Assembly (NCBI GenBank): GCA_965202585.1
Contig: OZ241830.1
Location: 18,538,001 to 18,602,000, forward strand
Direction: 5' to 3'
From: Thalia democratica
Taxonomy: Eukaryota
DNA length: 64,000 nucleotides
Made by a program: the position numbers and the translations under genes. Below, in pieces: positions 7,237-63,468 of the stretch. Each line of letters begins with the position of its first letter. Position 1 is the first letter of the stretch. The notes under the pieces are model-generated. The model saw only the letters and a list, made by a program, of their open reading frames with translations, was not told the origin of the DNA and did not search any database.

Positions 7237-8144
7237 TCATAAAGTTTCACAGCAAGAAAAATCAGCCAATTTTAAAGGCAAACTCGGACCTCTTCTCCAT
7301 TCATCTCTTTCAATATCGTATATCTCAACTTCATCTGTAGGAGTGTCGTAATCTAAACTACATCCCCCAATCACATACAAACTTGAATTTACAACGCAGC
7401 ATCCAAAACTAATACGTGGAATATTCATTGAAGCAACAAAACTAAACTGATTGGTTTCGTTTGAATAAACTTCAACAGAAGCTAAAAAGGAGTCTTTGTT
7501 GTCGCCACCAACAATAAAGAGTTTTCTGTGGTAAGCAACAGTGCTATGTCCAGATCGTTCAGTTAGGAGCCTCAAATTTCTTGTTTTCCATTTGTTTTGT
7601 GTAATATCGAATGTCTTGATACTGTCCAGCCATGTATCTGTGTCATTTGAATCGTTAAAACCGCCAATAGCCCAGACTTTTCCTTGAAAATAAGTCAGAG
7701 TAAATTCGCTTCTTTTAGTGTTCATACTAGAAACTTCAGTCCATTCACAAGTTTCAAAACTGTAGACTTCGCATTTGTCTAAATCTTCAGAAGAGTTTTT
7801 ATACCCTCCTCCGACAAAAACACATTCTGCTAAAGAACACATTCCAAAGCTTAGCCGTTTGTTGTGCATGAAAGGAAACGTTTTTGTAGCTAATTCCTCG
7901 TTAAGAGATATGGTCTCATTTTCAGCTGATTCAACGTAGTCTGATCCATTATATCCGCCTATCAAATACATTTGATCTCCTTTTATTGTGGATTGATGGC
8001 GACGTCTACGTGTACCGAAAGTTTTAAATTGATTTCATTTACCAATTTTTGTGTCAATTTTTAAAACACAGTTTTCGTAAGTTGTCTCATCTGATTTTCC
8101 TCCGCTAATGTATATATAATTTTTAACTTCATTGTTTTCTGCAC
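7237..8144 (-). pseudogene. Copy A exon 3: six Kelch repeats of the RING-coiled-coil-Kelch gene, with a premature TGA
   Basis: Six GG motifs (YISGG, YLIGG, FVGGG, WAIGG, FIVGG, YVIGG). Acceptor ttttttag|GTGCA at 8145/8144. TGG>TGA at 8035-8037, where B and C have Trp. Confidence 0.9.
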
Positions 8145-8455: not shown

Positions 8456-8916
8456 CATTAATTGAATAGCAGTTTGTGGTCTGAACATCGTTAATACTAT
8501 CATCTGATTTTTCGGCTGCGTTTCTTGATAACATTTTAATATTAGTTTTTATCCGTTTTGTAGTTTTTAAATCAGCCAACAAATCGTTATTTTCTGACTT
8601 TAAATTTTTGTAATCTTTTTTCAAGCACTCTGCTTTGTTTTGCGCCTGTCTGAGCGAATTTTCCAAAATTTCAATGTATTTAGTTACTACTTTGTTGTTT
8701 TCCTGCAATGCCTTGTTTTCAACTTCAAGTTCGACAGATTTCATCAATATTAAATCACTCATTTTTCATTGATTACGTGTAGTTCTTTCATATTGTTTTC
8801 AACTGTATTTGAAAGCCCTTCATGCAGTAAATTTTTATTCAACCATATTTTCATGTTGTAATCTAAAGTCTTCTTATTTCCACTAAAAACTTCATTTACT
8901 TTTTCATTGGCAGTCC
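8456..8916 (-). pseudogene. Copy A exon 2: coiled-coil region, frameshifted
   Basis: ORFs 8759-8962 and 8400-8762 join into the intact B/C exon once a 1-nt deletion in an A-run near 8760 is corrected. Splice sites ttttgaag|GG and AATG|gtacaa are phase 1. Confidence 0.85.
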
Positions 8917-9677: not shown

Positions 9678-10314
9678 TGTAACCGTCATCAATTGCGTTG
9701 ATGTTAGGTTGTTAGCTGCTCTTAAATAAGATAACAAGAAACGGTTATTTAAAGTATTACAGACGTTCGGATGGAACGCAGGCTTAATTTGATATACTAG
9801 TACTTACCATGAAAATAATAATATAAAAACTAGTTATTAGTGCACGTGATTTTATATACAACATTAATAAACACATCGTGAAATAAGTGAAAGAAAAGAA
9901 ATTAAAACCAATTACTTCTGATAAGAGCCCAGTAGGCACATATACTAACTACTAAACATTTTGTTGAAATGTACAGAAAGTAGACTGGACGATAAAGTAT
10001 TCTATCCACATTCTATCAATAAAACCCTTCTCGATTGTTCATCATACGATTCGCAATCCTGTCGTCAACACGTAGTTTTGTGCGTTCTCTCCCCCGGTAG
10101 TAATACGCCGACTCGCGTCTCTCCCGTCACTAATCCGCCTACTCGCGTCTGCAAGCTAAGTTTTAAACTCTTTCTCTCAAATTTACTTCACGCTTCTTTT
10201 TCTCATTTTCTATTCTCAATACTAGTTGTGACGTCACTGAAAACATTGAAATTCTTTAACTTTAACTCTTCTGAAATAAAACGAAACATAAAATGTAATG
10301 ATTGGTTCGTTACA
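9678..10314 (-). repeat. 3' LTR (637 bp)
   Basis: TG...CA ends; appears identical to 16469-17107 except in the first ~37 bp. Confidence 0.92.
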
Positions 10315-10335
10315 TTTTCTTTTGCTTAAATTTTT
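10315..10335 (-). other. Polypurine-tract-like sequence adjoining the 3' LTR
   Basis: Minus strand reads ...AAGCAAAAGAAAA immediately before TGTAAC. Confidence 0.55.
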
Positions 10336-11039
10336 TTTTCTTTTTTTCTTGCTTTTTTTTTTATTTTTCTAAATCTGGTCTCTTACCTTACCTCTCTATT
10401 TTGTCTTCATTTTAAGATTTTTTTTTTTCTATTTCTGTCTAGTATCAGTTTCTATCAACATTTTTATACTTAAGATTGTTATATCAACATTACCTTTTAA
10501 TGTATCAATAATCATTTACGTCTACCATTTAGTACCTGTACCCACAAACTCCTTCCGAAACCATTGGTAGAATAAAAAAAAGAAAAAAAGATAAAAATAC
10601 AAGTAAATAGAAAAAATTTTGTACATAAGTTAATTATTTAACAAGAATATGGTATTTTAATTACATGTGTATATACTTTTCTTAATTAAAATTAATTAAT
10701 TAAGTCAGTAATTCATAAAAAAAACTATAAACTTGGTGTTTTAAAAATTATAAACATAGACAATCATTGTTTAACATACATATTTACAATTATTTTTTTT
10801 ATTTGCCTGTTTGCAGAGCAGGAGTTATGTAAGTAAAAGTGTATGTAGAATTAAAAATCTTATTTTGAGCTAATTAAATCTTAAAAAAAACTGATGTTTA
10901 TGTTACTTTGAAAATTGAATGTTATTTAAAGTTAAGTAATTAAAAAAATTACATAAAAAAACTTATAACAAAACCTTAATATTGTTTTTCTTAATTTTTT
11001 TGATGCAATAAACTCAATGTAAGTTTTTTTTTTTGTGAA

Positions 11040-11815
11040 TTCCTCGTCAACTTCTTCGTTTCCACCCATCATCTTCCATATCAACTTATTCGTCCACACA
11101 TCATCTTCCATATCAACTTATTCGTCTCCACACATCTTCCATGTCAACTTATTCGTCTCCACACATCATCTTCCATGTCAACTTATTCGTCTCCACACAT
11201 CTTCCATGTCAACTTATTCGTCTCCACACATCATCTTCCATGTCAACTTATTCGTCTCCACACATCTTCCATGTCAACTTATTCGTCTCCACACATCTTC
11301 CATGTCAACTTATTCGTCTCCACACATCTTCCATATCAACTTATTCGTCTCCACACATCTTCCATGTCAACTTATTCGTCACCACACATCTTCCATGTCA
11401 ACTTATTCGTCTCCACACATCTTCCATATCAACTTATTCGTCTCCACACATCTTCCATATCAACTTATTCGTCTCCACACATCTTCCATGTCAACTTATT
11501 CGTCTCCACACATCTTCCATGTCTATTTATTCGTCTTCACACATCTTCCATGTCAACTTATTCGTCTCCACACATCTTCCATATCAACTTATTCGTCTCC
11601 ACACATCTTCCATGTCAACTTATTCGTCACCACACATCTTCCATGTCAACTTATTCGTCTCCACACATCTTCCATATCAACTTATTCGTCTCCACACATC
11701 TTCCATGTCAACTTCTTTGTCTCAACACATCATCTTCCATATCAACTTTTTCGTCTCCACACATCTTCCATGTCAACTTCTTTGTCTCCACACATCATCT
11801 TCCATCTCAACTTCT
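11040..11815. repeat. 31-bp minisatellite (TCTTCCATGTCAACTTATTCGTCTCCACACA, some units +TCA), ~25 units, inside the LTR element
   Basis: Direct reading; explains the three overlapping repetitive ORFs. Confidence 0.95.
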
Positions 11816-14800
11816 TCTTTTTTTGATTTATTTTGATTTTCAGTTAATTTAGTTTGTTGCTTGTGCCGTTTTCTTCGTGATTCTTGAATTTAAATATCTT
11901 TAAGCACTCATATTTTTAAAATATCTTTATTAGAACTTGTTTTGACTTATAACAATGATAATGAATTATTCTTAGTATATATTTATAAAAAGGGTTATTT
12001 CATTTCTATTAAATAAGATACTGTTAAGAACTTTAAAAATAAAATTGAACTTTAGCAGACAGCAGGCTATATCATTAAACTTAAGTTTAAATTTCTATAT
12101 ACAAGTTGTGCTTCTTAAAAAGTTACTTTTTTTGTGTTAGTACTTAGACATAAGTAGTTCGACTATCTTTCAGTTAATATTACTGGAGATGTTTACCCTT
12201 CCAAACTTTAAAAAAAATCTTTTCCTCACATAAAATAATAAATATTTCTGAGTTCAGCCAACGAAGTTCGTATAAAATATTGATAAATTGAGAAGTTTCA
12301 TTGTGTAGTGTCACGGGAATAGAATGCGTGAGCGTTCCACGACTTTTATGTTATGGCACAGGATTGATAAATACGTAACTTTGACGTGAACATTTCATTT
12401 TCTTTGTTTGGTGACACTGGAGTAGTAGGTGATTTCTGATCACAAAACTAATAATGTGTATCCCACAATTACTGAATAAAAAAAATTAATGAAAAGCTCT
12501 CGCAATAACAAGTTAAATATTAAAAATGCTGCTGACCCTAAAATTTGCATGTCTTTTATGCGAAAAGAAAGTACACTTATTATAGTTTTGAACAAAGTAT
12601 TTGCGATCTCCAGACTTTTTTAAAAACTGTATTAGAATAGCACTCATCTCTGGTCGTTTAATAACTTATAGTTTCTTATTTGTTTAAAGTTTAACTTATT
12701 CAATAATTTTATGAAAACAAGCCTGCTGCTGATAAATGGCTGCTTTTGAAATAATAGTACCAAAAAGTATATTATTTTACCTGATTATATTTGAAAAATT
12801 ATACACACAATTGCTTGTCATAAAACGTTAAGTTTTTTATTTGAAAATAAGAGTTTTTAAAGTTAGGAATTCAAAATAATATAGTTTCTAACTTATTACT
12901 ACTAAATTACTTGACAAATTACTACTTTTAAAACACTTCTGTATGTTTTATTAACTAATAATTAATTATTTTTTATGAGCCTTAGCGCTTGAAGTTAAAT
13001 TTTTTTGTTTAATAATTAAAGTTATATAAGACTGAATGTAGATTACAATCTTAAACTATTTATGTTTCATTAGTTGAATATTTGCAATGTTTTAGAGTAA
13101 GTTCACTTATAAATTGATATAGTAACAAAGAAATAGAGTAACTCGGATGTTAATTTACTGTTATAATATATCATATTTAACTTAATGTCATGACTTGACA
13201 ACTTTTATACACTTGATTTGTGGTTATTCTACTGGCTTAAAAAAAAAAACTATTTTTATATTATTTTTATGATATACAATGCATTAATATTAATATAATT
13301 AAATAAATACTGAAACTTTTTTATTTTTTATAGTTTTATTATATTTACTTACAAACACATTTTTTAATGTAGAAAGTGTGTTTGGCGTTCGTAAGTTAAT
13401 TTTTGTAATATAAAACATTTTTTAAGACAAAAGCAGGTAATGCTTTTAATTTAAACTATCAAAAATTTAAGGAAACTTTATATACTTATAAATTCTAAAG
13501 GAAAACTTCAAACGTAATTATGTAATTGAACTTGGCATTGACTTTAATAACAAAGATTTAAGATTCATTTTTGCCATTTTACGAGCAGTAAAAGAAACTG
13601 AAAATTCACTGTTAACATGCCATGCGAAGTTGCTTACGAGTTAAGTAGTTAAACTAGTAATTTAAAAAGGACCAGATTTTTTGCGCTTTCTTAAAAACCA
13701 AAAATATATATTATTTAATCAAATAATGTAAACAATATACATATACAAGTAAAAAGAATATAGATAATTAATACGAAAACTACAACAGACAGACTATACA
13801 TATAGTAACTATAAATCATAAAATACTTCTAAGCATGACATAATGAGAATAAACTTAATAAGTAATTTGTAATTTAAGACAACGAAAGTCCTACATCGAT
13901 GCTTAAACCCATAAAATGCCTTACGCATAATATCAACTCTACCGTTACCGCAACAAATCACAACTGCTCGTGAAACTACAATCAAAAGTTTATATACCTA
14001 TTGTTTATACACTTTTTAAGCAAACATTAGTGGACGTTTTTAGGCATTAAGTAAGATTGTTGAAAATAGATAAAGCTACTCATAATTTATGTTTTGATAT
14101 AATTTATTTTAATAGTCTAAATTAATAAGTATTTAAAGCAAAGTATTTATTTTATTATTTAAATAATTTATTTAAATTAACTAAATGATAACAGTTATTT
14201 TTAATTTATGTTCACAGAAATATGTTTGATAGTTATTGTATCATTATAGCAATTAATATTTAAAGATTAATTGTATTTTGTAACTTTTTTACTGAAAAAT
14301 TATTATAACTTTATCAATAGATATAAATCACTATAAGTAATCAAAATAGCTTTAAACCTACAGAGAAAACTAATTATTAAACTACAAGTTTGCCGTACAA
14401 TGTGACGTAATATATCAACAAATTGAGTTAAGTATTTCTTTTCAAATTATGTTACAAGAGACTAATAAGACAATTAGTTAATAAAATTAAGTGTTTTGGT
14501 AAGAAAAACTTCATAGTACTTTTAGGTTCTGTTTTGTTATCGATTTAAAGTCAAACGCCATACTAAATAAATTAAAGCCAGATGTTATGAAAATTTAACA
14601 ATTGTTATTTACTCCTAACGTTTTAGATTTTATCGATAAAAAAATAAAATCCAACTGAAATTTAAATTGATAAGAAAGTTTAACTTTTACGACAGTAACT
14701 ATAAAAAATTATCAGATGCTTGTAAAACGAAAATAGCAAGTTTTATTTTGTTATTGTTTGAAAAATTTATTTTTGACAATTTTTTATGTGAAAATTTTCA

Positions 14801-16450
14801 AAAACTGTCAACCATTACTCCTATTTGTTTATGATTAAAGTACATTTTTACTGCTAAAATTTTATCTTAAGAAAATTCGATTTTCAATACGACGGGAATT
14901 TTATCACAAACAGGTGCGGTTAAATAATTTAAACTCCTTCTGTTGTGTTAACAATCTTTAAAACATTGTTAAAAAAGATTTAAAGTTAGGCTATAAGATT
15001 GTATCGTAATAATTTAAAGTTTGAAAATAAACATTCCTAAAGTTATTAAGTATTGTGTAGTTATTATACACGAATTGTAGTTAGAATATATTAAAATATT
15101 CTAAACTTCTTATATTCTTAATGAAAACCACACTAACAAAAATAATAGCAACATAATAATACACATGACATAGTTAATTAGTTTGTAAATGTAAACAACA
15201 AAACTTTTTTTATTTTTTTATTATATAATATTTGCAATTTTTTTATGGTTTTTTGTCATATCTTTTAATTTTATGTACTTTTCATATTTATTTTTTATTT
15301 TACCAACTAAACATATGAAAATAAAATAACTTAAAATTTAGTATATGGTAGTAACATACAAAAAAAAAATCCTTTAATTGTTTCGATATTTTGAATAAAA
15401 ATAGTTTTAACAAAACTTTAAGTATAGATGCAAATTAATCCATATTAATAGTTTCCGAATTAAATAGGGAAAATTTATAACCTACACCGCAAACACTTGA
15501 ACAAATTTAATTTGCACTTAAATCAATTCTGAAAGTTATTTAACTACACATTATGTCACTTCTTATACAAAAAGTTATTTTCGAAATGTTATAACTTCAC
15601 TTGTTTAATTGTTATTATCTTAAATACTTCTCGTTTGAACTTATTGTTTTATAGTTATGATGTAAAACACATACAAAGTATCAAAAAAATCAAAAACCTG
15701 ATTTAAGTGATTGAAGTTTTAATCTTAAAACCAATAATTATTAGGTGAAGTCATTACTGTTAGTATTAGTCGAAAAATAAGATTTGTTTTAAACAAAGGA
15801 GTTACTTTAAGTGTCTTTAGAATTTGTTTTGAAAATGTTTTGTCTATTTTTAAAATCAAAGTATTTAATTTTTAACCAACTTAAATAACATAAATGAAAC
15901 CATATAAATTTTACATTTTTAATTTATAAGTTACATTTTAAGGTATTATAATATAAAATTCTAAAACATGTAAAAAATTGAATATTTGTTATTATGTAAT
16001 TATTGTAACAAGTAGTGGTGCTTGAAAAATAATAAACAAATTTTAATTAATGGCAAAAAATGTAGTTAATATGTATAAAATGTTGAAATAGTAAAGATTG
16101 ATGTACATCCGAATGAGCTGAATTATTCAAAGATCATCTTGTTATAGTTGAAAATATTTGGTCAAACCTCAAAAAAATCCCATTCACAACCTCTTCGTGG
16201 CGGTCCATTCACAATTTTGACTAGCATTCACAATCTCTTCGTCCATGAAATCGGTTGGTTTCCTGGATTCCCATGTCCAGTCCCTGGCCGGGTCGGTTGT
16301 AAATTCCTCTGAGCGGTTCCGCTGTCCATCTTTTATGTTCTAGGTTGTCAGTTTTTGCGTAATTTGATTCTCATTTGCTTGTGGTTCGATAGTTATTTGT
16401 CTTCGTGGGCGCATTCGACTGTTAATCTTAAAGGTAATAGGTTTGTAGGC

Positions 16451-16468
16451 CGTTGTGGAGTTACGCCA
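16451..16468 (-). other. Primer-binding-site-like sequence TGGCGTAACTCCACAACG
   Basis: TGG (complement of tRNA CCA) immediately follows the 5' LTR on the minus strand. The cognate tRNA was not identified. Confidence 0.65.
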
Positions 16469-17107
16469 TGTAACCGTCCTCAATTACGATGTTGTTAGAT
16501 TGGTTTAGCTGCTCTTAAATAAGATAACAAGAAACGGTTATTTAAAGTATTACAGACGTTCGGATGGAACGCAGGCTTAATTTGATATACTAGTACTTAC
16601 CATGAAAATAATAATATAAAAACTAGTTATTAGTGCACGTGATTTTATATACAACATTAATAAACACATCGTGAAATAAGTGAAAGAAAAGAAATTAAAA
16701 CCAATTACTTCTGATAAGAGCCCAGTAGGCACATATACTAACTACTAAACATTTTGTTGAAATGTACAGAAAGTAGACTGGACGATAAAGTATTCTATCC
16801 ACATTCTATCAATAAAACCCTTCTCGATTGTTCATCATACGATTCGCAATCCTGTCGTCAACACGTAGTTTTGTGCGTTCTCTCCCCCGGTAGTAATACG
16901 CCGACTCGCGTCTCTCCCGTCACTAATCCGCCTACTCGCGTCTGCAAGCTAAGTTTTAAACTCTTTCTCTCAAATTTACTTCACGCTTCTTTTTCTCATT
17001 TTCTATTCTCAATACTAGTTGTGACGTCACTGAAAACATTGAAATTCTTTAACTTTAACTCTTCTGAAATAAAACGAAACATAAAATGTAATGATTGGTT
17101 CGTTACA
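16469..17107 (-). repeat. 5' LTR (639 bp)
   Basis: Direct repeat of 9678-10314 with TGTAAC...GTTACA ends. Confidence 0.92.
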
Positions 17108-17166
17108 GCAAATAAATAAATAAAAATAAATATTTAGTTTTCATGCAAAACGACTGTATAAACATA

Positions 17167-18403: not shown

Positions 18404-18986
18404 CTTTACTAATTACTGCTTCAATATTGTTGATAGCATCTTCACAAGTATTTACATCGATTTCGTTTTCTTTTACTTCTAACTTTTGCTCCTCAATAGT
18501 TTCTTCTTTTTCATTAAGCAATCTTCTTTTCCTTTTCAACCGGCACTTTGTTAAGTTTAACTTACTGATTTTTTCATTCAAGTTTTTAATTTCTTTCTGG
18601 AAACCTCTCAAGAACACCTTACACAAGCTGTAGCCTTTACAGTTGGTTTTGTAAGTTTCCTTTAGACGGGTTTTTTCTTTATCTAACTTCTTAATGATTT
18701 TTACCATGGTCATCCTTTTGTTTGCTTCATACTCAACAACTTTATCAAAGAAGCTCAAAGTATCATTTGAACAATCACTGTAGTCAAGTTCTTTATTCAC
18801 ATTAAAGTGAACTTTAACTATTTTTTCTTCCTGTAAATCTTGTCTACAAATTGGACATTTCTTATTCTCACCTTTTATTACGTTTGATATGCAGCCTTTG
18901 TGAAAGGTATGACCACACGGTGTGACAGATACTTCTGTGTCTACTTTGAATAATCTATCCAGGCATATACAACATTCGTACTCCAT
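18404..18986 (-). CDS. Copy A exon 1: RING-H2 finger plus coiled coil (gene disrupted downstream)
   Basis: CxxC...CGHTFHKGC...CPIC is a C3H2C3 RING, TRAIP-like in spacing. Donor AAAG|gtttgt at 18404/18403. ORF track 18294-18986. Confidence 0.88.
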
Positions 18987-25600: not shown

Positions 25601-25659
25601 ACTTCAAAATCATCATTAGAATCCCTGCACCATCAGGAAAATATTTGAATAAAATTTAA

Positions 25660-31851: not shown

Positions 31852-32759
31852 TTAAGTTTCAGTGCAAGAAAAATCAGCCAATTTTAAAGGCAAACTTGGA
31901 CCTCTTCTCCATTCATCTCTTTCAATGTCGTATATCTCAACTTCATCTTTAAGAGTTGCGTAATTAAAACTATATCCCCCCATCACATACAAACTAGACT
32001 TTACAACGCAGCATCCAAATCTAATACGTGGAATATTCATTGAAGCAACGAAGCTAAACTGATTTGTTTCGCTTGAATAAACTTCAATTGAAGCTAAAAA
32101 GGAGTCTTTGTTTTCGCCACCAACAACAAAGAGTTTTTTGTCGTGAGCAACAACGCTATGCCCAGATCGTTCAGTTAGGAGTCTCAAATTGCTTGTTTTC
32201 CATTTGTTTTGAGTAATATCGAATGTCTCTATACTGTCCAGATATGTATATGTCCAGTTATTTGAGTCCTTGATACCGCCAATAGCCCAGATTTTTCCTT
32301 GAAAATAAGTCAAAGTAAGGTCGGATCTTTTAGTGTTCATACTGGAAACTTCAGTCCATTCACAAGTTTCAAAACTGTAGACTTCGCACTTGTCTAAATC
32401 TCCATAAGAGTTTTTATACCCTCCTCCGACAAAAACACTTCCTGCAAAAGAACACATTCAAAAGTCTAGCCGTTTGTTGTGCATTTTTGGAAACGTTTTG
32501 GTAGCTAATTCCTCGTTAAGAGATACGGTCTCATTTTCAGCTGAATAAGCATAGTCTGATCCATTATATCCGCCTATCAAATACATTTGATCTCCTTTTA
32601 TTATGGATTGATGCTGACGTCTACGTGTACCGAAAGTTTTAAATTGATCCCATTTACCAATGTTTGTGTCCATTTTAAAAACACAGTTTTCGTAAGTTGT
32701 CTCATCTGATTTTCCTCCGCTAATGTATATATAATTTTCAACTTCATTGTTTTCTGCAC
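31852..32759 (-). pseudogene. Copy B exon 3: six Kelch repeats with one in-frame TGA (32458-32460)
   Basis: ORFs 32458-32784 and 31852-32457 are in the same frame, separated only by TGA where A has GGA. Acceptor ttttttag|GTGCA. Confidence 0.88.
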
Positions 32760-33070: not shown

Positions 33071-33538
33071 CTTTAATTGAATAGCAGTTTGTGATCTGAT
33101 CATCGTTAATATTATCATCTGATATTTCGCTTGCATTTCTTGATAATTTAACCTTACTAATATTAGTTTTTTTCCGTTTTGTAGCTTTTAAACCAGCCAA
33201 CAGATTGTTATTTTCAGACTTTAACTTTTTGTAATCTTTTTTCAAGAACTCTGCTTTGTTTTGCGCCTGTCTGAGCGAATTTTCCACAATTACAAGGTAT
33301 TTAGTTATTTCTTTGTTGTTTTCTTGCAATGCCTTGTTTTCAACTTCTAGTTCGACAGATTTCACCAATATTAAATCACTTATTTTTTCATTGTTTACGT
33401 GTAGTTCTTTCATATTGTTTTCAACTTTATTTGAAAGCCCTTCATGAAGTAAATTTTTATTCAACCATATTTTCATGTTGTAATCTAAAGCTTTCTTATT
33501 TTCACTAAAAACTTCATTTACTTTTTCATTGTCAGTCC
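33071..33538 (-). CDS. Copy B exon 2: coiled-coil region (468 nt)
   Basis: Open frame rich in E/K/L/N heptads. Acceptor ttttgaag|GG and donor AAAG|gtacaa, both phase 1. ORF track 33015-33584. Confidence 0.82.
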
Positions 33539-34749: not shown

Positions 34750-35332
34750 CTTTACTAATTACTGCTTCAATATTGTTGATAGCATCTTCACAAGTATTTA
34801 CATCGATTTCGTTTTCTTTAACTTCTAACTTTTGCTCTTCAATAGTTTCTTCTTTTTCATTAAGCAATCTTCTTTTCCTTTTCAACCCATCCTTTGTTAA
34901 GTTTAATTTACTGATTTTTTCAAACAAGTTTTTAATTTCTTTCTGGAAACCTCTCAATAAAACCTTACACAAACTGTAGCCTTCACAGTTGGTTTTGTAA
35001 ATTTCCTTTAGACGGGTATTTTCTTTATCTAACTTCTTAATGATTTTTACCATGGTCATTCTTTTATTTGCCTCATACTCAACAACTTTATCGAAGAAGC
35101 TCAAAGTATCATTTGAACAATCACTGTAGTCAAGTTCTTTATTCACATTAAAGTAAACTTTAACTATATCTTCTTCCTGTAAATCTTGTCTACAAATTGG
35201 ACATGTCTTATTCTCATCTTTTATTACGTTTGATATGCAGCCTTTGTGAAAGGTATGACCACACGGTGTGACAGATACTTTAGTGTCTAATTTGAATAAC
35301 CTATCGAGGCATATACAACATTCGTACTCCAT
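34750..35332 (-). CDS. Copy B exon 1: RING-H2 finger plus coiled coil (583 nt)
   Basis: C3H2C3 RING at the N-terminus; donor AAAG|gtttat, phase 1. ORF track 34733-35332. Confidence 0.9.
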
Positions 35333-43293: not shown

Positions 43294-43619
43294 TAATATT
43301 CATAGTTAATCAGAAAACAATAACCTATTAATTTGGTGGTAAATCATGATAGTAGCTGGATGACAGCTTCTTTCACATAAGTCAATGTACTTTGCACATT
43401 TCCATTTTTCAGCTGTAGGTTGTGACTTCAATGCATTATTTATATAAAGAATGATATTAATAATTTAATACTGAAATAGATCATGAGAGTAAAATGGACA
43501 ATACACTAAAAGCTAAATTAAACACTAGTGCTAGATTAAACTAAAACAATAAACTAAGTTGGTTTAATTATTAAATACAGTAATAAGTCTAAAATATTTT
43601 TTGTGTTATCTAAAAATTT

Positions 43620-44040: not shown

Positions 44041-45464
44041 TACTCTGTTCATACAACTTAAAAGGAACTTGTGCTACGCTGTCAAAATTAAGAAAAAATC
44101 TTAGCTGTTCAATTATATAGTTGTTTAACAAAACAGTAACTTATTTCACATATTTGATTGTGCTATATTACTAAATTTTAAATGTTAAAATTAACAATAT
44201 AAACAACCATGTTCAGTAACAACGATTAGATTTTCAATGCAAGCAGAAATTTCACTTTTGTGCTGTACACTAATTAAAAAGAGGTGGAACTAGTCTTAAT
44301 TAATACTTTAGAATGTGATAATAAATTTAAAACAATATTTTAAGACCCTGATTTTATAAGGAAGCTACTAACTAATTCCCATAAAATTTTCATCTGAAAA
44401 TGTTTGTGTTAATTACAAATTTAACATTCTGCATAATTTTTAAAGAACGTTGGTATAACAGTTTCACTTTAAATTAACTATGTATTTATTAGTTTACAAT
44501 CATGAAAAATAGTTATTTGTAAAGTTTAAATTAGGAACAATTTTATGTATTTATAATATATACTACTTAAAAATTAGGTTATATTTTAGCGTATATAATT
44601 TTTAGGTTTAATCAATTTATTTCAACTGAACTAAAAAACTGACTATTTCATTTAATCTACTTGATCGCGACATTAGTCTAATAAAGTTGCAATGTTGTCT
44701 TAAAATTGGCATTTTACAGGAGTGTTTTAAATTGTTTTTGATTTTGAATATATTTAATCACTATCAATAATAAAACCAGTAAACTTTTCATAGTCACATT
44801 TTATTTTTAAATTGTGAAATTTTTATTTTCCAAACTGAAAATTCTAGTTTTAATTTTTTCATCTATAAGTTATAATCTACAAATAAAGTTAACTATGTTT
44901 TTCAATTTTGTTTTAAAGCTTTTAACTTGTTTAAAGTTTTTTAATTAGAGTTCGGCAAATTATTATTTTTTTTGTAGAACTTGTTTGATTAAATTATTAT
45001 AAATGTTTAAACACTTGAGTATTTTTAAAAGTTTTATGTTAAAAGCTAGTACAAATTTACTTTGTTATTTTAAAATAAATAAGATGTACCAACTAACTTA
45101 AAAACAGAGACCGGAGCCTTTTATTTTTAATGAACTAACTAAATGAATAAAAACTTTAAACAAATAAAAAATAAAATAACCCATAATGAAAAGTTTTTTC
45201 ATACCATGAGTCTTAAAAAAATATTTTTAGCTTTTTTTTATTGATAAATGAACTTAACTATATAACATGGTATAAACCCTGTGATATACTATTTTGATAA
45301 AGCTGACTAATAAATGCTTTATACAAAATTAAGAAGAATCTTTCTGCATTTTTATTTCAAGAAATAAACAAGTGTAGTTGTACAACTTTTAGATAACATT
45401 TTACATTATTCAAACAAAATTGAAATTTTAGGGTAGAAAATAGTGAATCTACTTAATTATTTTA

Positions 45465-45892
45465 CATAAGGATTTTCTAAAGTATGCCAAGTGGCTCTCT
45501 TTTAACCATTACAGAAAGTTAGGCGGCCATAAGCAGCAAAGAGAGAAATCATAATCTAGGGTTGGGTATGAGCTGTAAAGGGGCCACAGGATAGCCATGA
45601 GGTCATAATTTGAAATTTACACAAGATATTCTGGTGTTTAAGATGAAGAGAAAAAATACAGGTTTTAAGCGGTTCAAAAGTAGTTCTGAAACTTAAACTA
45701 GTTATTATGATAGAATTTTAGTAAATCTAGTGACCACAAACTGTAAAAGGAAGAGCCAAAAGGCCATAATTAGATATTTACACTAGATGTTCTGGATTTG
45801 ATGACGAAGAACATAAAAAAGGGCCTTAAGTGTTTTCAATGGTAGTTTTAAGAGAAATCTTGTCGGAGAGGGTCATTGTTTGGGAAACCCTG
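45465..45892. mobile_element. ~430-bp hAT-like MITE
   Basis: Right end GTTTGGGAAACCCTG, decayed left end, GGGCC motifs. Mirrored at 54194-54620; only the right tip survives in A (~21520). Confidence 0.55.
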
Positions 45893-47504
45893 GTTTAAAA
45901 ATGGCTTTTTTTTTGTCAATCATTGCATATTTAATTTTCATATAGGCTAAAGTAATTTATTTTTTACAATAAGAGCTTTAAGGTTAAGAGCGAGTATATA
46001 TAAAAAGACAATTTTACTTCTAGATAAAGTGTTTTATTTACATTTAGAAATTTATAAACTCATTTAAAAAGTGTCTTGTTACGGTTTAAAAGAGTTGCCT
46101 ACCACAGAGTTGCTATTATTTGAGTAAAAATGAATTATTGATTTACGGAAACTAAACTCAGTTTTATTAACTTAGTTTTAGTTTTTTTTTCCATGTTGTA
46201 AAATAATTAAAACATCTGTATTATCCAAATTTTTAAAAAATTTCTACTGACCAAGTATAATTACTAAAAAGTTAAAAATAGTGACTAAATTATAAAAGTA
46301 AAAAAATACAACAACATATAAAAAAAAATTCAAATTAAAAACAATTATAAAATAAGACCTGATATCCAAATTTACTTAAGTTTTTAAGTTTCGCAACAAA
46401 CTATTAAAGAAACCTGAATTAGCCTGAAGTGTAAATAAGTTTAATAATTTTAGATTTATATTACTTAATTTAAAGTTGTTATAAAAAAAATTAATATTTA
46501 ACAAAAAAAGTTCTTCTTGATATAATAAGGCTAGACAGTAGAAAAGCCTCATGGTTTAAGTAAACTTTAGAAACAAAAACCAAAGAAAAATAAATAAATA
46601 CAAAAGTAAAAGATGTGAAAACAAGTGTAAAACCTGTTTTGATTATCTACTATACAAACTTAAAAAATAAATATTTGGCAAAGTAGTACACGTTTTCATT
46701 TTAATAAGTTTTAATGATTTATAAATTCATTTGACAACATAGTTAACTTGGATTAAAAGGTTAAGTACATGTACTTTTAAGGTGGTCCTAATACAGGGTT
46801 GTCATTTTTAAGAAAAAACAGCCAGCTTGAAAAACCAAAGCTTAAAATGAAAGTTTAATATATGTTTATTGAAATAAAAGTTGGTTAAAATAACTGTTTA
46901 TACTACACTGTTGCCATTCTTTCAAGTAAAACAGAATACTTGATTGACAAAGAATTAGACTGATGTTTATCAATCAAGCCTGAGTTATCTTCAGCTTGTA
47001 AAATATTTTAAATAAACATACCGTAAAAAAGCATGAAAAACTACTATCATTTAACTAAAATTACATAGAAATACAAAACAATAACCAAAGGTTTTAATAA
47101 AAACATAGTTCTTAGCAAAAGTGTCATAAAACAATTCATGTATATATAAAAACATATTTTAAGTAATCTAAGTTTTAAAATAAATATCAAACAAGCCTTG
47201 GTTAGCCATAAAAATTAAAACGTTTACTTTTATTTAATTATTTTCTTTTATTTCAAATAACTAACTAAAAATTATTGTTAAAATGCACTATTTTTAACAA
47301 GAGAATTTTTTGCTACTTTATTTAAAAATAAGTTTAAAGAGTAGAAGCACCTCTGGATCTTAGTAAACTTAAAAGAAAAAAAAAACATTTAAAACAAATA
47401 AATTAAGTGAAAGAACTTGCTTTGATATAATAAGTTTATAAATTTAAAATGTTATGAAAGGTAGTGTGAATCTAAAGTTACATGTTTAAAATATAATTTT
47501 AAGC

Positions 47505-47915
47505 ACTTTTGCTAGAAGCCACTTTTGCACGGCGTCACGCTTGCACAAGTAACTTTTGCGAGAAGTGACTTCTTTATTAATGAAGAAACTTTTGAACTGG
47601 TTCAATTTTCTTTTAAATTATTATAATATACAATTACTGTTACCCCTAACCTTTACCCTAGGCTGGTTATACTTTTCTTGTAAATATTACTAAAATTTTT
47701 TTTTATTACTGTTACCCCAAACCCTTACCCTTGGTCTTATTTTTGTTTAATTTTTCTTATTTAAATTTAATTTTCTTTTATTTAAACTGTTACCCATAAG
47801 TGTAACTTTTACCTTTGGTCGGTTTATTATTATGATTATTTTTAACTCCCTAAAAATCGACTCTTTGTGCATATTTGATCATTGTTTAAAAGTATTTTCG
47901 TTCGTGTTTGACCCA
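47505..47915 (+). repeat. Second member of the TTACCCTAACCC-containing repeat family
   Basis: CACTTTTGCACGG left end, TTACTGTTACCCCTAACC units, GTGCATATTTGA right end; mirrored at ~52185-52600. Confidence 0.6.
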
Positions 47916-48261
47916 TCTCAAATTTAAAGGGGCTTCCAATACATGGATGACATTCTTGATAACAAAACAGCCAGCCTGAATGATCAAAAACTAGGCTGAG
48001 TTATATATCTAGCCTGAGTTAGTTTGAACTTATAATATAATTCAATATGATATAGTATAAGCCAAAAACTTAAAAACTATTATTTATCAGTTTATATTTG
48101 TCTAAAAACCGAAATATTTCAAAAGGCACTTTAAAAACATAAAAATCAAGGAAAAAAAAGTAATGAAATAATGCCTGATAAAATAAAAATTAAAACTATT
48201 CCGGAGTACTCTGAGTATTAGTCTGACCAATAAAGGATAACATTTATAAATTTGTTTAGAT

Positions 48262-48410
48262 CAGAGGTCGGAAATAAACAGGTCCTCAAGTGCTAAGCTT
48301 CTGTTATTAAAACTATCGCCGGCTGCAGTTTTTATTTTAATTAATATTAATTTCATTTGGTTTTAACTACACAGAAAGTTTCTTTTTAAATGCAAATAAC
48401 TTTTTTAGTC
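48262..48410 (+). mobile_element. Isolated, decayed 5' end of the same hAT family as 39221-42556
   Basis: CAGAGGTCGG start with C(T/C)GCAGTTTT and TGGTTTTA...CAGAAA similarity to 39221-39350; mirrored at ~51680-51831. Confidence 0.5.
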
Positions 48411-48969
48411 TGAAATTAGCATTGATTAAAACATTTAAAATAATTTATTTTATTTTGATTTGTTATAATGTTACTGTAATAAATTAATATTTTGTTAGTT
48501 TTCTAAATCGTCTTAGTACTTCAACAGTTTTTTCTTCATCTTGTATTTTGTCAATATACAAAAATATGTTTTCAAAGTATGCAAATGTTTCTGATTATCT
48601 TATTTTTTTTTTTTGAAGTGTTTTCGATATATAGTTCTCTAGCGAACAAAAATTAGGATCTAAACGGAACTACATTAAATACAATTCTAAAAACCATATT
48701 ACGAATCACTACTTTAGAAATTTTACTATAATTGTGTGATGTCTTACATTGTTGTAATTTAAACGAAACTACTTTCTTTATTTTATGTGTGTAAATTGTA
48801 ATGTTACAATTTTTATAAAAGTTTGCAACAAAAGCAATAGCTGTTATGTTTTTAATCTAAATCACACAATTTATCTAAATAGCTAAAAATATATTTAGCA
48901 TCATGATTACCAACAGTTGTATATACAAATTAAGCTGCTCCTTTCCGTTGATATTTTCTACTTGCGTTT

Positions 48970-50371
48970 ACTCACAAGTCAAGAAAGGACGCACGAGAAA
49001 AGGAAGTTGTCTACCAGGTATACCTGAAAAGCTACATGGGTAGAAGTCAGTGAAAACCAAGTTCAAACACGAAATACTTTGTTTAACTGACAATTACGCG
49101 CTGGGTGTTAAGCGCTGCCCACTAGTTGGGAATTAAAATCATTTTTGTGGACGTGTAAAGGATCACAGCGGGGAGCATACATGCTCCAAAACAAAACAAG
49201 ACACTACCAGAATGTTTGATTGTTTTAGGGGTTTTACGAAGGTTATAGGGACAGGAAACAAATGTAGGTGGAAGAAAGGTCGGACTTGGGCTTAACCTCA
49301 ACAAGGAAATAGCGTGATTGAATCAAACTGGAAGTTCTTGCCCCTTTTGAAATTGATAATCGGTTAAAACTGCAGGACTTTGGGTGCGGATGGTGAACGG
49401 AGCAGTAAGAGAGGTCGGATGTTTTGCAAGGGAAGTCATGTTTGTGGTCGATGGTCGCCTCTGTTACGTGTACAACTTATTCAACTACAACAATTACAAA
49501 AAATTGTCTGCCGACACAAACTCAAGTTTCGAGTTCCAGAGCTTCTGCAAAGGCGACTCGGGCGGTCCGGTGTCTTGCAGGAAGTCGAAAAGTGATCAGT
49601 TCGATAGTTTGGTGCACAGTTTCATGCGGAGGTTTTAAATTTCAAACTACCGGTAGCATTGGACAGCCGTGCGTGGCAACTAAGCTCTTGGCCCGAGTAA
49701 AGTATATTGATGAAAACGTGAGAACAGTTTCTCCAAACTTGTTTATTAAGCAACAAGGATCGGACGCGAGAGTGGGGAACCCTATTTATCACGCTCCTTA
49801 TTCAGCAACAAAAAAGATTATACTATAGCTTGCCAAGGCGCCACCCTCAGCAAAAGATGGGTTTCAACCACATCGAGTTGCGTTGATAGTTAACTGTTGG
49901 AGCACACGGAAGGACCGTTCAATTTCCAAAAAGACCAGAAAGATTTTGAACGTCTTAACTTCAAAACGGGTTGCACCACATAGACAGCTTGAAGGTAAAA
50001 ATTTCTAGTAATTTGTGCCAACACGAAGGCAATCAAAAGCTCAATGACAAGTATGATAAACACAACATTGCGTTGGTAATTCTCCGCGATGAAATTGATC
50101 AAAAAGTTCAGTTTGACAAGCCGTTGAGAATGATTACTGGTCGCAATGACAAAGACTGCAAAGTGTTTATATGGGAAAATAAATATGACACTGAGGACGA
50201 CAATCCTCTTCAGATGTAGGTAATACTAGAAAATAGGTATTTTAGATGAAAAAAGGTGCAGCTCTCTCATTTTTAACCCAAGTTCTATGCAGTTGCTATA
50301 TGGTCATCATGTTTGTACAGAACAAGAACTTTGGAGACCTACCATCAGTGTTGAAGCAGTAACTAGTTTAA
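48970..50371 (+). pseudogene. Double-domain S1 protease pseudogene (protease plus protease homolog)
   Basis: VYQVYLK, RWVLSAAH*, FCKGDSGGPVSC, GQPCVATKL, then domain 2 CQGATLSKRWVSTTSSC and HEGNQK...HNIALVIL. Many stops and frameshifts. Confidence 0.88.
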
Positions 50372-60000: not shown

Positions 60001-60583
60001 ATGGAACACGAATGTTGTATATGCCTGGATAGGTTATTCAAAGTAGACACAGAAGTATCAGCCACACCGTGTGGTCATACCTTTCACAAAGGCTGCATAT
60101 CAAACGTAATAAAAGGTGAGAATAAGACATGTCCAATTTGTAGACAAGATTTACAGGAAGAAAAAATAGTTAAAGTTCACTTTAATGTGAATAAAGAACT
60201 TGACTACAGTGATTGTTCAAATGATACTTTGAGCTTCTTTGATAAAGTTGTTGAGTATGAAGCAGACAAAAGGATGACCATGGTAAAAATCATTAAGAAG
60301 TTAGATAAAGAAAACACCCGTCTAAAGGAAACTTACAAAACAAACCGTAAAGGTTACAGCTTGTGTAAGGTGTTCTTGAGAGGTTTCCAGAAAGAAATTA
60401 AAAACTTGAATGAAAAAATCAGTAAGTTAAACTTAACAAAGGGTGGGTTGAAAAGGAAAAGAAGATTGCTTAATGAAAAAGAAGAAACTATTAAAGTGCA
60501 AGAGTTTGAAGTTAAAGAAAACGAAATCGATGTAAATACTTGTGAAGATGCTATCAACAATATTGAAGCAGTAATTAGTAAAG
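60001..60583 (+). CDS. Copy C exon 1: RING-H2 finger plus coiled coil (583 nt)
   Basis: CCIC...CGHTFHKGC...CPIC; donor AAAG|gtttgt at 60583/60584. ORF track 60001-60642. Confidence 0.9.
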
Positions 60584-61789
60584 GTTTGTTAATTTGCTAT
60601 TGTTTAATTAACTTAATTATTTATGTAGAACTCACAGTTTAAAGTATAACCAGGATCCATACGGATCATCAATTTATAATAAGGTCCAGATAAATAAGTT
60701 TGAAATTATCAAAGTTTAAAACTCTATGTTGTGAGATATTATTATTAAATCAAATGCAAAACAACCTCTGATAATAGATAGATCAAAGAAAACTATAAAT
60801 CACTTTAAGTTTACAGTTTTAGATACTTCTACAAATAAAATTGACAATCTTCTAATTATTTTTAAAGCTTAATAAAACTAGTTAAAAAAGTTAAATTTTT
60901 TTTTGCATAACCCTTAATGTATGATTAATATATTTTTATTTATATCTTATATACCTTATTATCATCACTGATTATTAAAATATGTTTATACAGTCGTTTT
61001 GCATGAAAATAAATATTTATTTTCTCTTATAAATTTTTATGTTTTTTTCTATTCTTAAGACTACTAACTTAAACATTCTTTGTTTAACACTCTGTAAAAA
61101 ATTTTTTGAAGTTGTAAACTAATTAATAATATTTCTTGTTTAATTTGTTAATAAATTAAAATTCTATATTTATAAAAAACGTACTAGGATTTCATTTTAT
61201 AGGTGCACTACTTACTTAGTTCTGACAATTAGTAATTGACAATTTTTGTTCTAAAAACTAATTCTAATTCTTCAAAATTTAGTTATTGCTTTTTTCAATA
61301 CTTTTGTTAAATTATTTATTATTGTATTTTTTAAAACTGAAAAAAAGAAATTAATATGTAATTTTGAAATGTTTTTTTTTTAATTAATCTTCTTTTTTAC
61401 TACTATAGTCTTTTTAATTAGGCCTACATCCGAATATTTTTTGTATCACACTTTTTGAGATGTAGCGCCTTGTTTTCAATTATAAATTTATATTTTAAAC
61501 GCATATTTAACCGAAAATAGCCTAAGATACTTTAAATTACCTTAAATGTTTTCAACCAGTAGAAATTTAACTAAACAACACCTGGAAACTGTCAGTTCGT
61601 TATTTAAAATATCCAAAGTTTATTTTTGTTAGCGAGTCTTGAAGTTTAGTAGTTATTGATTGGAAATCGTATTAAAAAATATAAATATTAATTTTGTCGA
61701 GTAAAAATAGTTCTCAGTATAAAAATTTTAAATTAATTTTGTTATGGTTTTTAGTTTTATTTTATCTTTAAAATCGGAATTTTTTGAAG

Positions 61790-62257
61790 GTACTGACAAT
61801 GAAAAAGTAAATGAAGTTTTTGGTGGAAATAAAAAAGCTTTAGATTACAACATGAACATATGGTTGAATAAAAATTTACTTCATGAAGGGCTTTTAAATA
61901 AAGTTGAAAACAATATGAAAGAACTACACGTAAACGATGAAAAAATAAGTGATTTAATATTGATAAAATCTGTCGAATTAGAAGTTGAAAACAAGGCGTT
62001 GCAGGAAAACAACAAAGTAGTAACTAAATACCTTGAAATTTTGGAAAATTCGCTCAGACAGGCGCAAAACAAAGCAGAGTTCTTGAAAAAAGATTACAAA
62101 AAGTTAAAGTCTGAAAATAACGATCTGTTGGCTGGTTTAAAAGCTACAAAACGGAAAAAAACTAATATTATTAACGTAAAATTATCAAGAAATGCAAGCG
62201 AAAAATCAGATGATAATTTTAACGATGTTCAGATCACTAACTGCTATTCAATTAAAG
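61790..62257 (+). CDS. Copy C exon 2: coiled-coil region (468 nt)
   Basis: Acceptor ttttgaag|GT and donor AAAG|gtaaat, both phase 1. ORF track 61744-62265. Confidence 0.82.
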
Positions 62258-62565
62258 GTAAATAATAAAATTTTCTTTATTTCTAGAATTTTTACAACTT
62301 TTTAATACCTAAGGTTGTGTTCTTTTAGTGCACTTAAAACTTTAATCATCAAACCATGCTCTCAGCAGATGCAGGTTTTGTTTTCATTACTAAAAGCTTT
62401 CGCCCGATAATTTTGTTTTTAGTTAATTTCTAGTATTTTACGACAAATTATAATCAAGGCTCTAGCTCTGATGTCTAATGTAGATGTTTTCTTTTTAAAT
62501 GTTGATTTTTATTTAGTGTTTATAAAGACTTGCTTAACTGTTGTATACTTCATTTTCTTTTTTAG

Positions 62566-63468
62566 GTGCAGAAACCAATGAAGTTAAAAATTATATATAC
62601 ATTAGCGGAGGAAAATCAGATGAGACAACTTACGAAAACTGTGTTTTAAAAATGGACACAAAAAGTGGTAAATGGGATCAATTTAAAACTTTCGGTACAC
62701 GTAGACGTCGCCATCAATCTATAATAAAAGGAGATCAAATGTATTTGATAGGCGGATGTAATGGATCAGACTATGTTTATTTAGCTGAAAATGAGACCGT
62801 ATCTCTTAACGAGGAATTACCTACCAAAACGTTTCCAAAAATGCACAACAAACGGCAAGACTTTTGAATGTGTTCTTTAGCAGAATGTGTTTTTGTCGGA
62901 GGAGGGTATAAAATCTCTTATGGAGATTTAGACAAATGCGAAATCTACAGTTTTGAAACTTGTGAATGGACTGAAGTTTCTAGTATGAACACTAAAAGAA
63001 GCGAATTTACTCTGACTTATTTTCAAGGAAAAGTCTGGGCTATTGGCGGTTTTAACCACTCAAATGACACATATACATGGCTGGACACAATAGAAACATT
63101 CGATATTACAAAAAAACAAATGGAAAACAAGCAATTTGAGGCTTATAACTGAACGATGTGGACATAGCACTGTTGCTTACGACAAAAAACTCTTTGTTGT
63201 TGGCGGCGATAAAAAAGACTCATTTTTAGCTTCTGTTGAAGTTTATTCAAGCGAAACCAATCAGTTTAGCTTCGTTTCTTTAATGAATATCCCACGATGT
63301 TATTTTGGATGTTGCGTTGTAAATTCTAGTTTGTATGTGATTGGAGGTAGTTTAGATTACGCCACTCTAACAGATGAAGTTGAGATTTACGACATTGAAA
63401 AAGATGAATGGAGAAGAGGTCCGAGTTTGCCTTTAAAATTGACTGAATTTGCTTGCTCAAACACTTAA
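62566..63468 (+). pseudogene. Copy C exon 3: six Kelch repeats with a TGA (62865-62867) and a +1 frameshift (~63115)
   Basis: Acceptor cttttttag|GTGCA. ORFs 62541-62867, 62868-63152 and 63136-63468 together reconstitute the propeller. Confidence 0.88.

Follow-up and report, generated by a model that had tools for sequence, protein, structure and literature searches.

Three long open reading frames (ORFs)—encoding, in turn, a RING finger, a coiled coil, and a set of Kelch repeats—occur three times, as copies A, B, and C, in the 64,000-nt stretch of Thalia democratica DNA analyzed here (hereafter, the window). Their arrangement raises two questions: whether each set of ORFs is one spliced gene, as the first-pass annotation proposed, and, if so, whether its product would act as a ubiquitin ligase. 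We conclude that the ORFs are probably three exons of one gene belonging to a very large, tandemly amplified, lineage-specific tunicate family, likely encoding a self-contained RING E3 ligase. Features of the three copies are collected in Table 1.

Table 1. Exons, lesions, and an insertion in the three RING/coil/Kelch copies, in window coordinates.
Feature	Position	Strand	Description
Copy C exon 1	60001..60583	+	RING-H2 (residues 1-55) and first helical/coiled-coil segment; phase-1 GT donor at end
Copy C exon 2	61790..62257	+	Second helical/coiled-coil segment; phase 1-1 exon with AG acceptor and GT donor
Copy C exon 3	62566..63468	+	Six Kelch repeats, disrupted
Copy C in-frame TGA	62865..62867	+	Same TGA in copy B
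Copy C 1-nt insertion in A-run	63110..63116	+	Frameshift leading to stop at 63150-63152
Copy B exon 1	34750..35332	-	RING-H2 and coil
Copy B exon 2	33071..33538	-	Coil
Copy B exon 3	31852..32759	-	Kelch; TGA at 32458-32460 is the sole lesion
Copy B in-frame TGA	32458..32460	-	Codon 451
Copy A exon 1	18404..18986	-	RING-H2 and coil
Copy A exon 2	8456..8916	-	461 nt; 1-nt deletion near 8767 (frameshift), 6-nt deletion near 8532
Copy A exon 3	7237..8144	-	Kelch, with in-frame TGA at 8035-8037
LTR-like insertion in copy A intron 1	9678..17107	.	Direct repeats 9678-10314 and 16469-17107

The six splice junctions originally proposed for copies A, B, and C are all in place: every intron opens with GT, closes with AG, and interrupts the frame in phase 1, and a separate junction search guided by a reference protein arrived at the same positions. 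Exon sizes likewise agreed with those given, at 583 nt for exon 1, 468 nt for exon 2 in copies B and C, and 903–908 nt for exon 3. At the level of the family, comparison among paralogues supports reading the three ORFs as one conserved coding unit. We compared 43 paralogues, 40 of them fetched; the detailed sample draws on the contig C6 and C4 arrays and adds three copies from C1 and C4. The exons occur in one order throughout. Only one copy, itself broken, lacks the phase-1 GT-AG pair at the first junction, and two or three copies, likewise broken, lack the junction between exons 2 and 3. Intron lengths vary among paralogues, with intron 1 spanning ~190, 730, or 1200 nt and intron 2 ~134 or 300 nt. 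Intact copies, which the first-pass annotation had suggested seeking elsewhere in the genome, do exist: after splicing, 24 of the 40 fetched paralogues give an uninterrupted ORF of 642–653 codons.

Two ORFs from Tara Oceans contigs between them cover both junctions—P0049 (507 aa) holds RING, coil, and Kelch within a single ORF, and in P0006 a single ORF covers the RING and both coil segments, with a Kelch ORF coming after a GT-AG intron of ~100 nt. The only public sequencing runs that contain the stretch are DNA, and contigs from three such runs and one marine metatranscriptome are genomic, with introns and exons covered alike and without exon–exon joints, a pattern that argues neither for nor against splicing; a search for a transcript-derived protein of ~650 aa in a collection of 15 billion proteins found none. 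A prokaryote-style reading of the ORFs as three separate genes is barely credible, for although each is long by itself, no ATG opens exon 3, the ATG ahead of exon 2 falls within intron sequence that is not conserved, ~40 paralogues share the phases and GT-AG sites and have open joined frames, and single-ORF homologues cross both junctions.

The joined product of ~650 aa had initially been ascribed to copies A, B, and C themselves, yet none of the three retains an open frame. All are broken (Table 1) and are pseudogenes of the RING/coil/Kelch family, and the window locus therefore does not encode the ligase that it was thought to specify. Assembly error could account for the 1-nt indels in copies A and C but is a less likely source of the three TGA substitutions. 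Of the 43 paralogues, 41 have GGA, for a conserved Gly of the Kelch motif, at the codon replaced by TGA in copies B and C. We rejected decoding of this TGA as selenocysteine or under an alternative nuclear code, given the prevalence of GGA at the position and the TAA stop codons that close the two copies checked, B and C. Intron 1 of copy A reaches 9.5 kb because of the LTR-like insertion, whose direct repeats are 98.9% identical and flank a 31-nt tandem array at 11046-11817. An Rfam scan of the whole window returned no match.

Copy B, with a single lesion, might still be expressed, either through stop-codon readthrough or as a truncated product comprising the RING, the coil, and two propeller blades. 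Its 1956 nt contain no further stop or frameshift despite a difference of 5–9% from copy C, but this cleanliness has another potential source, as the mosaic divergence between B and C points to correction of the remainder of B through gene conversion by intact neighbours. Moreover, the lost codon is the conserved Kelch-motif Gly described above, and a propeller cannot close from a two-blade fragment. We therefore regard expression of copy B as very unlikely and treat it, like A and C, as a pseudogene.

The local amplification described in the first-pass annotation is real and larger than claimed. The duplicated units extend beyond the gene itself: copies A, B, and C sit within segmental duplications of 10–17 kb, and B and C, with one nonsense codon in common, lie on opposite arms of one inverted duplication. 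Around the window, a 1.1-Mb array contains ~50 loci, and the family as a whole numbers at least 150 scored loci. In a search with exon 1, all 150 scored of 1175 candidates were significant (119 of these 150 without a stop), and in a search with the Kelch exon, all 150 scored of 4495 candidates were significant; at least eight chromosome-scale contigs carry RING and Kelch exons in pairs separated by 1.5–5 kb. Subfamilies on other chromosomes, only 30–55% identical, keep the architecture and junction phases, most of them with open frames. With at least 150 scored loci and more than a thousand first-look candidates, the family ranks among this genome's larger expansions.

We show that the family is under selection for an open frame. 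Indel intervals occur at 0.155 per nt in intron 2 versus 0.009 in exons (~17 times rarer in the latter), and 15 of the 18 in exons have lengths divisible by three. Under neutrality, the tree length for intron 2 (2.29 substitutions per site) predicts ~273 nonsense changes; most broken copies have a single one. Purifying selection is nonetheless weak, with a 0-fold to 4-fold divergence ratio of 0.69 overall and 0.95 for exon 1, and much of the family may be decaying.

Carried to its limit, such decay would make the entire family a dead, passively amplified pseudogene array in which open frames are simply left over from recent duplication. The proportion of broken copies (16/43), the similar divergence of exons and introns in some close pairs, and the ratio of 0.95 in exon 1 all point in this direction. 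However, nonsense codons and frameshifts fall far below the intron-based neutral expectation, exon indels are almost all multiples of three, and architecture and phases persist, mostly in open frames, in the divergent subfamilies elsewhere in the genome. On this balance, an array that is dead throughout seems distinctly improbable.

Intact members of this family would be proteins of ~650 aa, comprising an N-terminal RING-H2 (residues 1–55), a helical part of ~290 residues, and a six-blade Kelch propeller lying wholly in exon 3. The RING-H2 scored above the cut-off in a domain profile search of exon 1 (zf-RING_2, E 1.4e-11), and its zinc ligands follow the spacing C-x2-C-x15-C-x-H-x2-H-x2-C-x11-C-x2-C, with the C3-H2-C3 order of a cross-brace. 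All eight (CCCHHCCC) are present in 40 of the 43 copies; of the exceptions, L055 is otherwise intact and has lost one zinc ligand (Cys47 to Tyr), and the apparent mismatches in L069 and L070 arise from a 1-residue offset. An Ile after the first Cys, the Pro of CPxC, and an Arg right after the last Cys are all present, features that fit an active RING given established RING–E2 contacts. At the central-helix position, where RING-H2 fingers usually have Trp, there is a Val. A structural model of exon 1 predicts the RING (pLDDT 78–88) and a single helix over residues 74–160, beginning ~20 residues after the RING. The helical part, mostly long helix, is divided between exons 1 and 2, with exon 2 giving weak coiled-coil-type matches only in the domain search.

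Exon 3 encodes Kelch repeats (Kelch_1, E 1e-42) with six GG doublets spaced 48–52 residues apart. The window copies being broken, the Kelch exon of an intact paralogue, L036, was folded with AlphaFold2; the resulting model (pLDDT 89.7, pTM 0.89) is a six-blade propeller of the KLHL type, with TM scores of 0.87–0.89 to the propellers of KLHL2, KLHL3, KLHL12, KLHL17, and KEAP1, in keeping with the Kelch module first proposed. A mixed alignment of full-length relatives and exon pieces placed exon 2 on the propeller and was left out of the folding. The loops after each GG doublet, which lie on the top face of the propeller, are the parts most variable between paralogues. For these loops, the Nei-Gojobori method gave an omega of 0.73 versus 0.51 elsewhere (permutation p 0.22), whereas the 0-fold to 4-fold ratio was 1.65 versus 0.57 elsewhere; as the two results disagree, we make no claim of positive selection.

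The two halves of the protein resemble different known systems. TRAIP-like character was suggested at the outset for the RING-H2, and insect TRAIP proteins are indeed the nearest named relatives of the RING and coiled-coil part, as well as the best named matches to exon 1 in the whole library, at a modest E of ~1e-8; by BLASTP, exon 1 is 41% identical to TRAIP over residues 1–81, and the alignment extends to ~residue 154. In both, a RING-H2 at the extreme N-terminus leads directly into a long coiled coil, here a predicted one. TRAIP is without a propeller, however, and its C-terminal half bears other motifs, whereas here a Kelch propeller follows the coil; TRAIP is also a single-copy gene, in contrast to a family of hundreds here. 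The propeller is instead closest, in both sequence and fold, to the six-blade propellers of BTB-BACK-Kelch (KLHL) CUL3 adaptors such as KLHL2, KLHL3, KLHL12, KLHL20, and KEAP1 (E 1.6e-42 to KLHL2 by sequence; ESM Atlas and AFDB neighbours are also BTB-Kelch proteins). Unlike these adaptors, the present family lacks BTB and BACK and has the propeller joined to its own RING, so that cullin/RBX1 would not be needed. In domain order and logic, the family corresponds to COP1 and RFWD3 (WD40) and to the TRIM-NHL proteins (TRIM2, 3, 32, 71), in which an N-terminal RING and an oligomerising coiled coil precede a C-terminal beta-propeller substrate receptor, except that the propeller here is Kelch instead of WD40 or NHL.

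Domain searches set the family apart from each of these established classes. In exons 1 and 2, no BTB or BACK match was found at E up to 0.1, unlike in KLHL proteins, and no F-box match at the same threshold, unlike in the F-box/Kelch CUL1 adaptors (FBXO42, plant FBK). Despite the RING and long helix typical of TRIM/RBCC proteins, the domain search detected no B-box, and the family is therefore not a TRIM. WD40 likewise gave no match, the propeller being Kelch, which separates the family from COP1 and RFWD3, and the domain search matched neither the zf-TRAF nor the MATH domain of TRAF proteins; TRAF6 RINGs were distant matches only (E ~3e-5) in a search of solved structures.

Taken together, these features suggest a mechanism in which the RING would recruit E2~ubiquitin, the chain would oligomerise through its helical part, as TRAIP, TRAF, and TRIM proteins do, and the top face of the propeller would bind substrate; in the absence of a cullin adaptor domain, such a protein would be a self-contained RING E3 ligase. 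Gene structure, domain folds, family size, and selection for an open frame are demonstrated by the analyses above, whereas ligase activity and cullin independence are inferred from domain content, and oligomerisation and substrate binding are likewise inferred. Alternatively, intact members may be genuine proteins that do not act as ligases by themselves: the RING may be structural or regulatory and the protein a scaffold or cytoskeletal adaptor, a role that some Kelch proteins have, or the protein may work only inside a larger complex. The Val in place of the usual Trp lends some weight to this alternative, and a homodimer prediction for two copies of the exon 1 product reached 0.08 against a mark of 0.32, although this score is not evidence either way. 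Against it, the eight zinc ligands, the Ile, the CPxC Pro, and the terminal Arg are kept, as fits an active RING, and TRAIP proteins, the closest of the named relatives, have E3 activity. We consider this alternative unlikely, although it is the most probable of those discussed, and prefer a self-contained ligase.

The textbook role of Kelch propellers is that of substrate receptors linked to ubiquitin via BTB-CUL3 or F-box-CUL1; a KLHL-type propeller tethered by a coiled coil to a RING of the same chain would be a compact, cullin-free design. The host, a tunicate by its mitochondrial genetic code, belongs to a chordate group with poorly known innate recognition systems, and the organization of the family recalls the expanded TRIM families—fish finTRIM and the primate TRIM5/TRIM22 cluster—which show tandem amplification, birth-and-death, pseudogenes, and variable loops in the C-terminal recognition domain. 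Tandem copies, many pseudogenes, and variability in recognition-domain loops are found here too; in the TRIM families the recognition domain is PRY-SPRY rather than Kelch. Rapidly evolving defence, as suggested in the first-pass annotation, had as its basis only the amplification and the variable loops, and the tests for positive selection disagreed. It is conceivable, if rather doubtful, that hundreds of RING/coil/Kelch ligases in megabase-scale birth-and-death arrays, most variable on the propeller face that would bind substrate, form a diversified intracellular recognition system of one pelagic-tunicate lineage, serving virus restriction, innate immunity, or self/non-self discrimination. 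If so, the repertoire would have arisen convergently with the TRIM-SPRY expansions of vertebrates, using a Kelch propeller no longer tied to CUL3. The paralogues, which share one scaffold but differ in their top-face loops, would also be useful natural material for studying the evolution of Kelch specificity. Annotation of such loci calls for spliced gene models of the eukaryotic type, with a pseudogene flag on many copies, all three in the window among them.

The architecture had been thought unfamiliar, a view that holds in part. BTB, BACK, F-box, and B-box are absent, and full-text literature searches (RING-Kelch, and Kelch with RING, tunicate, expansion, or TRAIP) returned no description of this arrangement; the true relatives are Tara Oceans ORFs only (P0049, P0163, P0006, P0001, and ~60 Kelch ORFs). 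The combination of RING and Kelch as such is not unique, however. ESM Atlas clusters of 86 (mostly ciliates), 63, 75, and 134 members have both Pfam families in 75–100% of members, a cnidarian cluster of 303 members, automatically named 'TRAF6 family', has Kelch repeats, and two unrelated database proteins combine the domains (P0250, with RING, zf-TRAF, and Kelch, and P0263, with a C3HC4 RING and Kelch). These represent separate, uncharacterised families that are 27–29% identical to ours in the Kelch part only and have other RING types or extra TRAF fingers.

Sequence comparison argues strongly that the RING, coiled-coil and Kelch ORFs are exons of a single gene, as the first-pass annotation had proposed. 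Every junction claimed for the three window copies (A, B, and C) has a GT donor, an AG acceptor and phase 1, and an independent search—in which all GT/AG pairs near the ends of tblastn hits were tried and the joined peptide was scored against a reference—recovered the same positions exactly. We compared 43 copies, comprising 40 from the genome and the three in the window; the public sequencing runs containing the window stretch are genomic, and their contigs span introns and exons alike, none joining one exon directly to the next. Exons 1, 2 and 3 occur in that order in all 43; only one broken copy lacks a phase-1 GT-AG pair at the exon 1-exon 2 junction, and only two or three broken copies lack the exon 2-exon 3 junction. 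Three lengths of intron 1 (about 190, 730 or 1200 nt) and two of intron 2 (about 134 or 300 nt) occur; exons vary in length only by multiples of three. The claimed product of about 650 aa is borne out by 24 of the 40 fetched copies, in which splicing yields an uninterrupted ORF of 642-653 codons, but not by A, B or C, all of which are interrupted.

Disruptive changes are also scarcer in the coding exons than intron 2 would predict. In a tree-wide test with an intron-2 tree length of 2.29 substitutions per site, and with 6.1% of single-base coding changes creating a stop, neutrality predicts about 273 nonsense events, whereas broken copies mostly carry one each. Likewise, intron 2 contains 0.155 indel intervals per nt and the exons 0.009 per nt, with 15 of 18 exon indels being multiples of three. 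Among database sequences, P0049 (507 aa, from a Tara Oceans metagenome) encodes RING, coil and Kelch in a single ORF that spans the exon 2-exon 3 junction, without most of the exon 2 coil; the P0006 ORF spans the exon 1-exon 2 junction, and a GT-AG intron, about 100 nt long, separates it from a Kelch ORF downstream. The relatives on the Tara Oceans contigs L071 and L072 have fewer introns; in L072, exons 1 and 2 are fused and the second intron, of about 100 nt, is the only one left.

Taken as a family, these genes are real and numerous. In the 802-Mb assembly, where the window occupies 18538001-18602000 of contig C6, the RING exon gave 1175 first-look candidates and the Kelch exon 4495; for each exon, all 150 candidates scored were significant, and 119 of the 150 RING candidates were free of stops. 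About 50 copies, at least 84% identical, form a local array at 17.57-18.66 Mb of contig C6, with further arrays on C1, C2, C4, C5, C7, C8, C9 and unplaced contigs. Even at identities as low as about 30%, RING and Kelch exons remain co-oriented pairs separated by 1.5-5 kb. Because all nearer relatives of exon 1 are unnamed marine metagenome ORFs, the annotated proteomes of the collections searched do not contain this family. The Kelch exon has about 60 further unnamed matches among marine ORFs, at 45-77% identity.

Positions of gene copies, duplications and repeats in the window
Feature	Position	Strand	Description
Copy A	7237-18986	minus	three-ORF unit
Copy B	31852-35332	minus	three-ORF unit
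Copy C	60001-63468	plus	three-ORF unit
Inverted duplication	31301-48872 vs 64000-51215		87-89% identical; arms carry B and C
Direct duplication	3452-21519 vs 27649-37816		contains A and B
LTR-like element	9678-17107		in intron 1 of copy A
Direct repeats of LTR-like element	9678-10314 and 16469-17107		639 nt, 98.9% identical
Tandem array	11046-11817		31-nt unit, 24 copies; between the direct repeats
Higher-G+C block	~48.6-51.2 kb		33-34% G+C; centre of inverted duplication
Repeats of this block	388-3355 and 25657-26721		
Short ORF in repeated block	49384-49638	+	GDSGGP- or GDSGSP-like motif
Short ORF in repeated block	25802-26014	-	GDSGGP- or GDSGSP-like motif
Tandem repeat, window left edge	1-385		15-nt unit, 25 copies, 90% matches; mimics a 124-aa ORF

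Within the window itself, the only representatives of the family are three pseudogenes: the junctions of the first reading were exact, but an open frame exists in none of the three copies. When spliced, copy B has 652 codons with a TGA at 32458-32460 as its sole interruption. Copy C carries a TGA at the same codon (62865-62867) and a second lesion, a 1-nt insertion in an A-run (63110-63116) that shifts the frame to a stop at 63150-63152. In copy A, exon 2 is missing 1 nt near 8767 and, in frame, a further 6 nt, and exon 3 is interrupted by a TGA at 8035-8037. Where B and C have TGA, the remaining 41 of the 43 paralogues have GGA, which encodes a conserved Kelch-motif Gly. Since B and C sit on the arms of the inverted duplication, the shared TGA was most simply inherited or transferred from one arm to the other by gene conversion. 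Along exon 3 the two copies diverge in a mosaic fashion, and they are not sisters in the exon 3 tree.

The window is AT-rich eukaryotic DNA (21-34% G+C in 2-kb windows). Intron 1 of copy A reaches 9.5 kb, swollen by the LTR-like element, which looks like a young insertion; each of its direct repeats holds an ORF of about 121 aa, identical in the two, without a Pfam match. The short ORFs in the higher-G+C blocks, one with a weak, sub-threshold Trypsin match (E 0.006), may be serine-protease gene fragments carried by the repeat.

In Pfam searches, exon 1 contains a RING-H2 finger (zf-RING_2, E 1.4e-11), the rest of exon 1 and exon 2 give only weak coiled-coil-type matches, and exon 3 consists of Kelch repeats (Kelch_1, E about 1e-42); BTB, BACK, F-box, B-box, zf-TRAF and MATH were not found in the three exons. 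All eight zinc ligands are intact in 40 of 43 copies, and apparent mismatches in paralogues L069 and L070 reflect a 1-residue offset. The RING also keeps Ile after the first Cys, Pro of CPxC, and Arg directly after the last Cys, which we take, from known RING-E2~ubiquitin contacts, to fit an active RING. One paralogue with a full open frame, L055 (G000:C6:18261886-18265350), has lost the last zinc ligand (Cys47 to Tyr); it may encode an inactive ligase or have become a pseudogene very recently. In the exon 1 model, the RING is followed by a helix (74-160) and a second helix continuing into exon 2. The Kelch exon, with six GG doublets spaced 48-52 residues apart, was modeled from L036, an intact paralogue that the exon 3 tree places among copy C's closest relatives (pLDDT 89.7, pTM 0.89); the model matches the KLHL2, KLHL3, KLHL12, KLHL17 and KEAP1 propellers at TM 0.87-0.89, and KLHL2 is the best natural solved relative by sequence (E 1.6e-42).

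This putative ligase shares its RING, coiled-coil and propeller design with COP1, RFWD3 and TRIM-NHL proteins but falls outside all of them, having a Kelch propeller and no B-box; it differs from KLHL adaptors in lacking BTB and BACK, and from F-box/Kelch adaptors in lacking an F-box. Among named proteins, insect TRAIP proteins are the best matches to exon 1, with alignment extending beyond the RING into the coil. The family may have originated through fusion of a TRAIP-like RING and coil with a KLHL-type propeller exon, an exon-shuffling event to which the phase-1 boundaries would be suited. The pairing of RING with Kelch is not unique: several ESM Atlas clusters from ciliates, cnidarians and unrecorded taxa carry both, as do P0250 (RING, zf-TRAF, Kelch) and P0263 (RING and Kelch). 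A literature search found no description of any of these proteins. Gene model and architecture stand for the family, while ligase activity, cullin-independence, oligomerisation and a defence role stay putative.

Constraint on the family is moderate: the overall 0-fold to 4-fold divergence ratio is 0.69, with exon 2 at 0.48 and the propeller at 0.76. Exon 1 divergence between copies is 0.050 at 0-fold and 0.053 at 4-fold sites, versus 0.165 in intron 2; 4-fold divergence in exon 2 is 0.18 (array L031-L067, G000:C6 17.57-18.66 Mb). Because both site classes of exon 1 are unusually similar between copies, the comparison suggests that gene conversion homogenises the RING exon. Intron 1 falls into two length classes here, about 730 nt and about 1200 nt, whose members are interspersed along the same array. 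In the propeller, differences between copies are concentrated in the eight residues that follow each GG doublet and immediately behind each blade's conserved Arg. If KEAP1 and other KLHL propellers are a guide, these positions probably belong to the B-C and D-A loops on the top face, where substrate would bind. Two measures bear on whether diversifying selection underlies this variability: the 0-fold to 4-fold ratio reaches 1.65 in post-GG loops versus 0.57 elsewhere, and the Nei-Gojobori ratios are 0.73 versus 0.51 (permutation p 0.22). Pseudogenes make up about 37% of sampled copies, and the family follows a birth-and-death pattern.

The nearest public-data relatives of the genome are Tara Oceans plankton contigs. 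Its mitochondrial COX1 (contig C1833; L074 1465-2997) is open under the ascidian mitochondrial code (AGA/AGG = Gly, TGA = Trp), with 33 AGR codons and the canonical motifs GGFGN, HLAG, GGGDP and FGHPEV; under the bacterial code, TGA stops break the frame and Arg falls at conserved Gly positions. This code usage identifies the genome as that of a tunicate. Fragments of COX1 also occur in nuclear copies of mitochondrial DNA, at 56.84-56.94 Mb of C4 and on C757.
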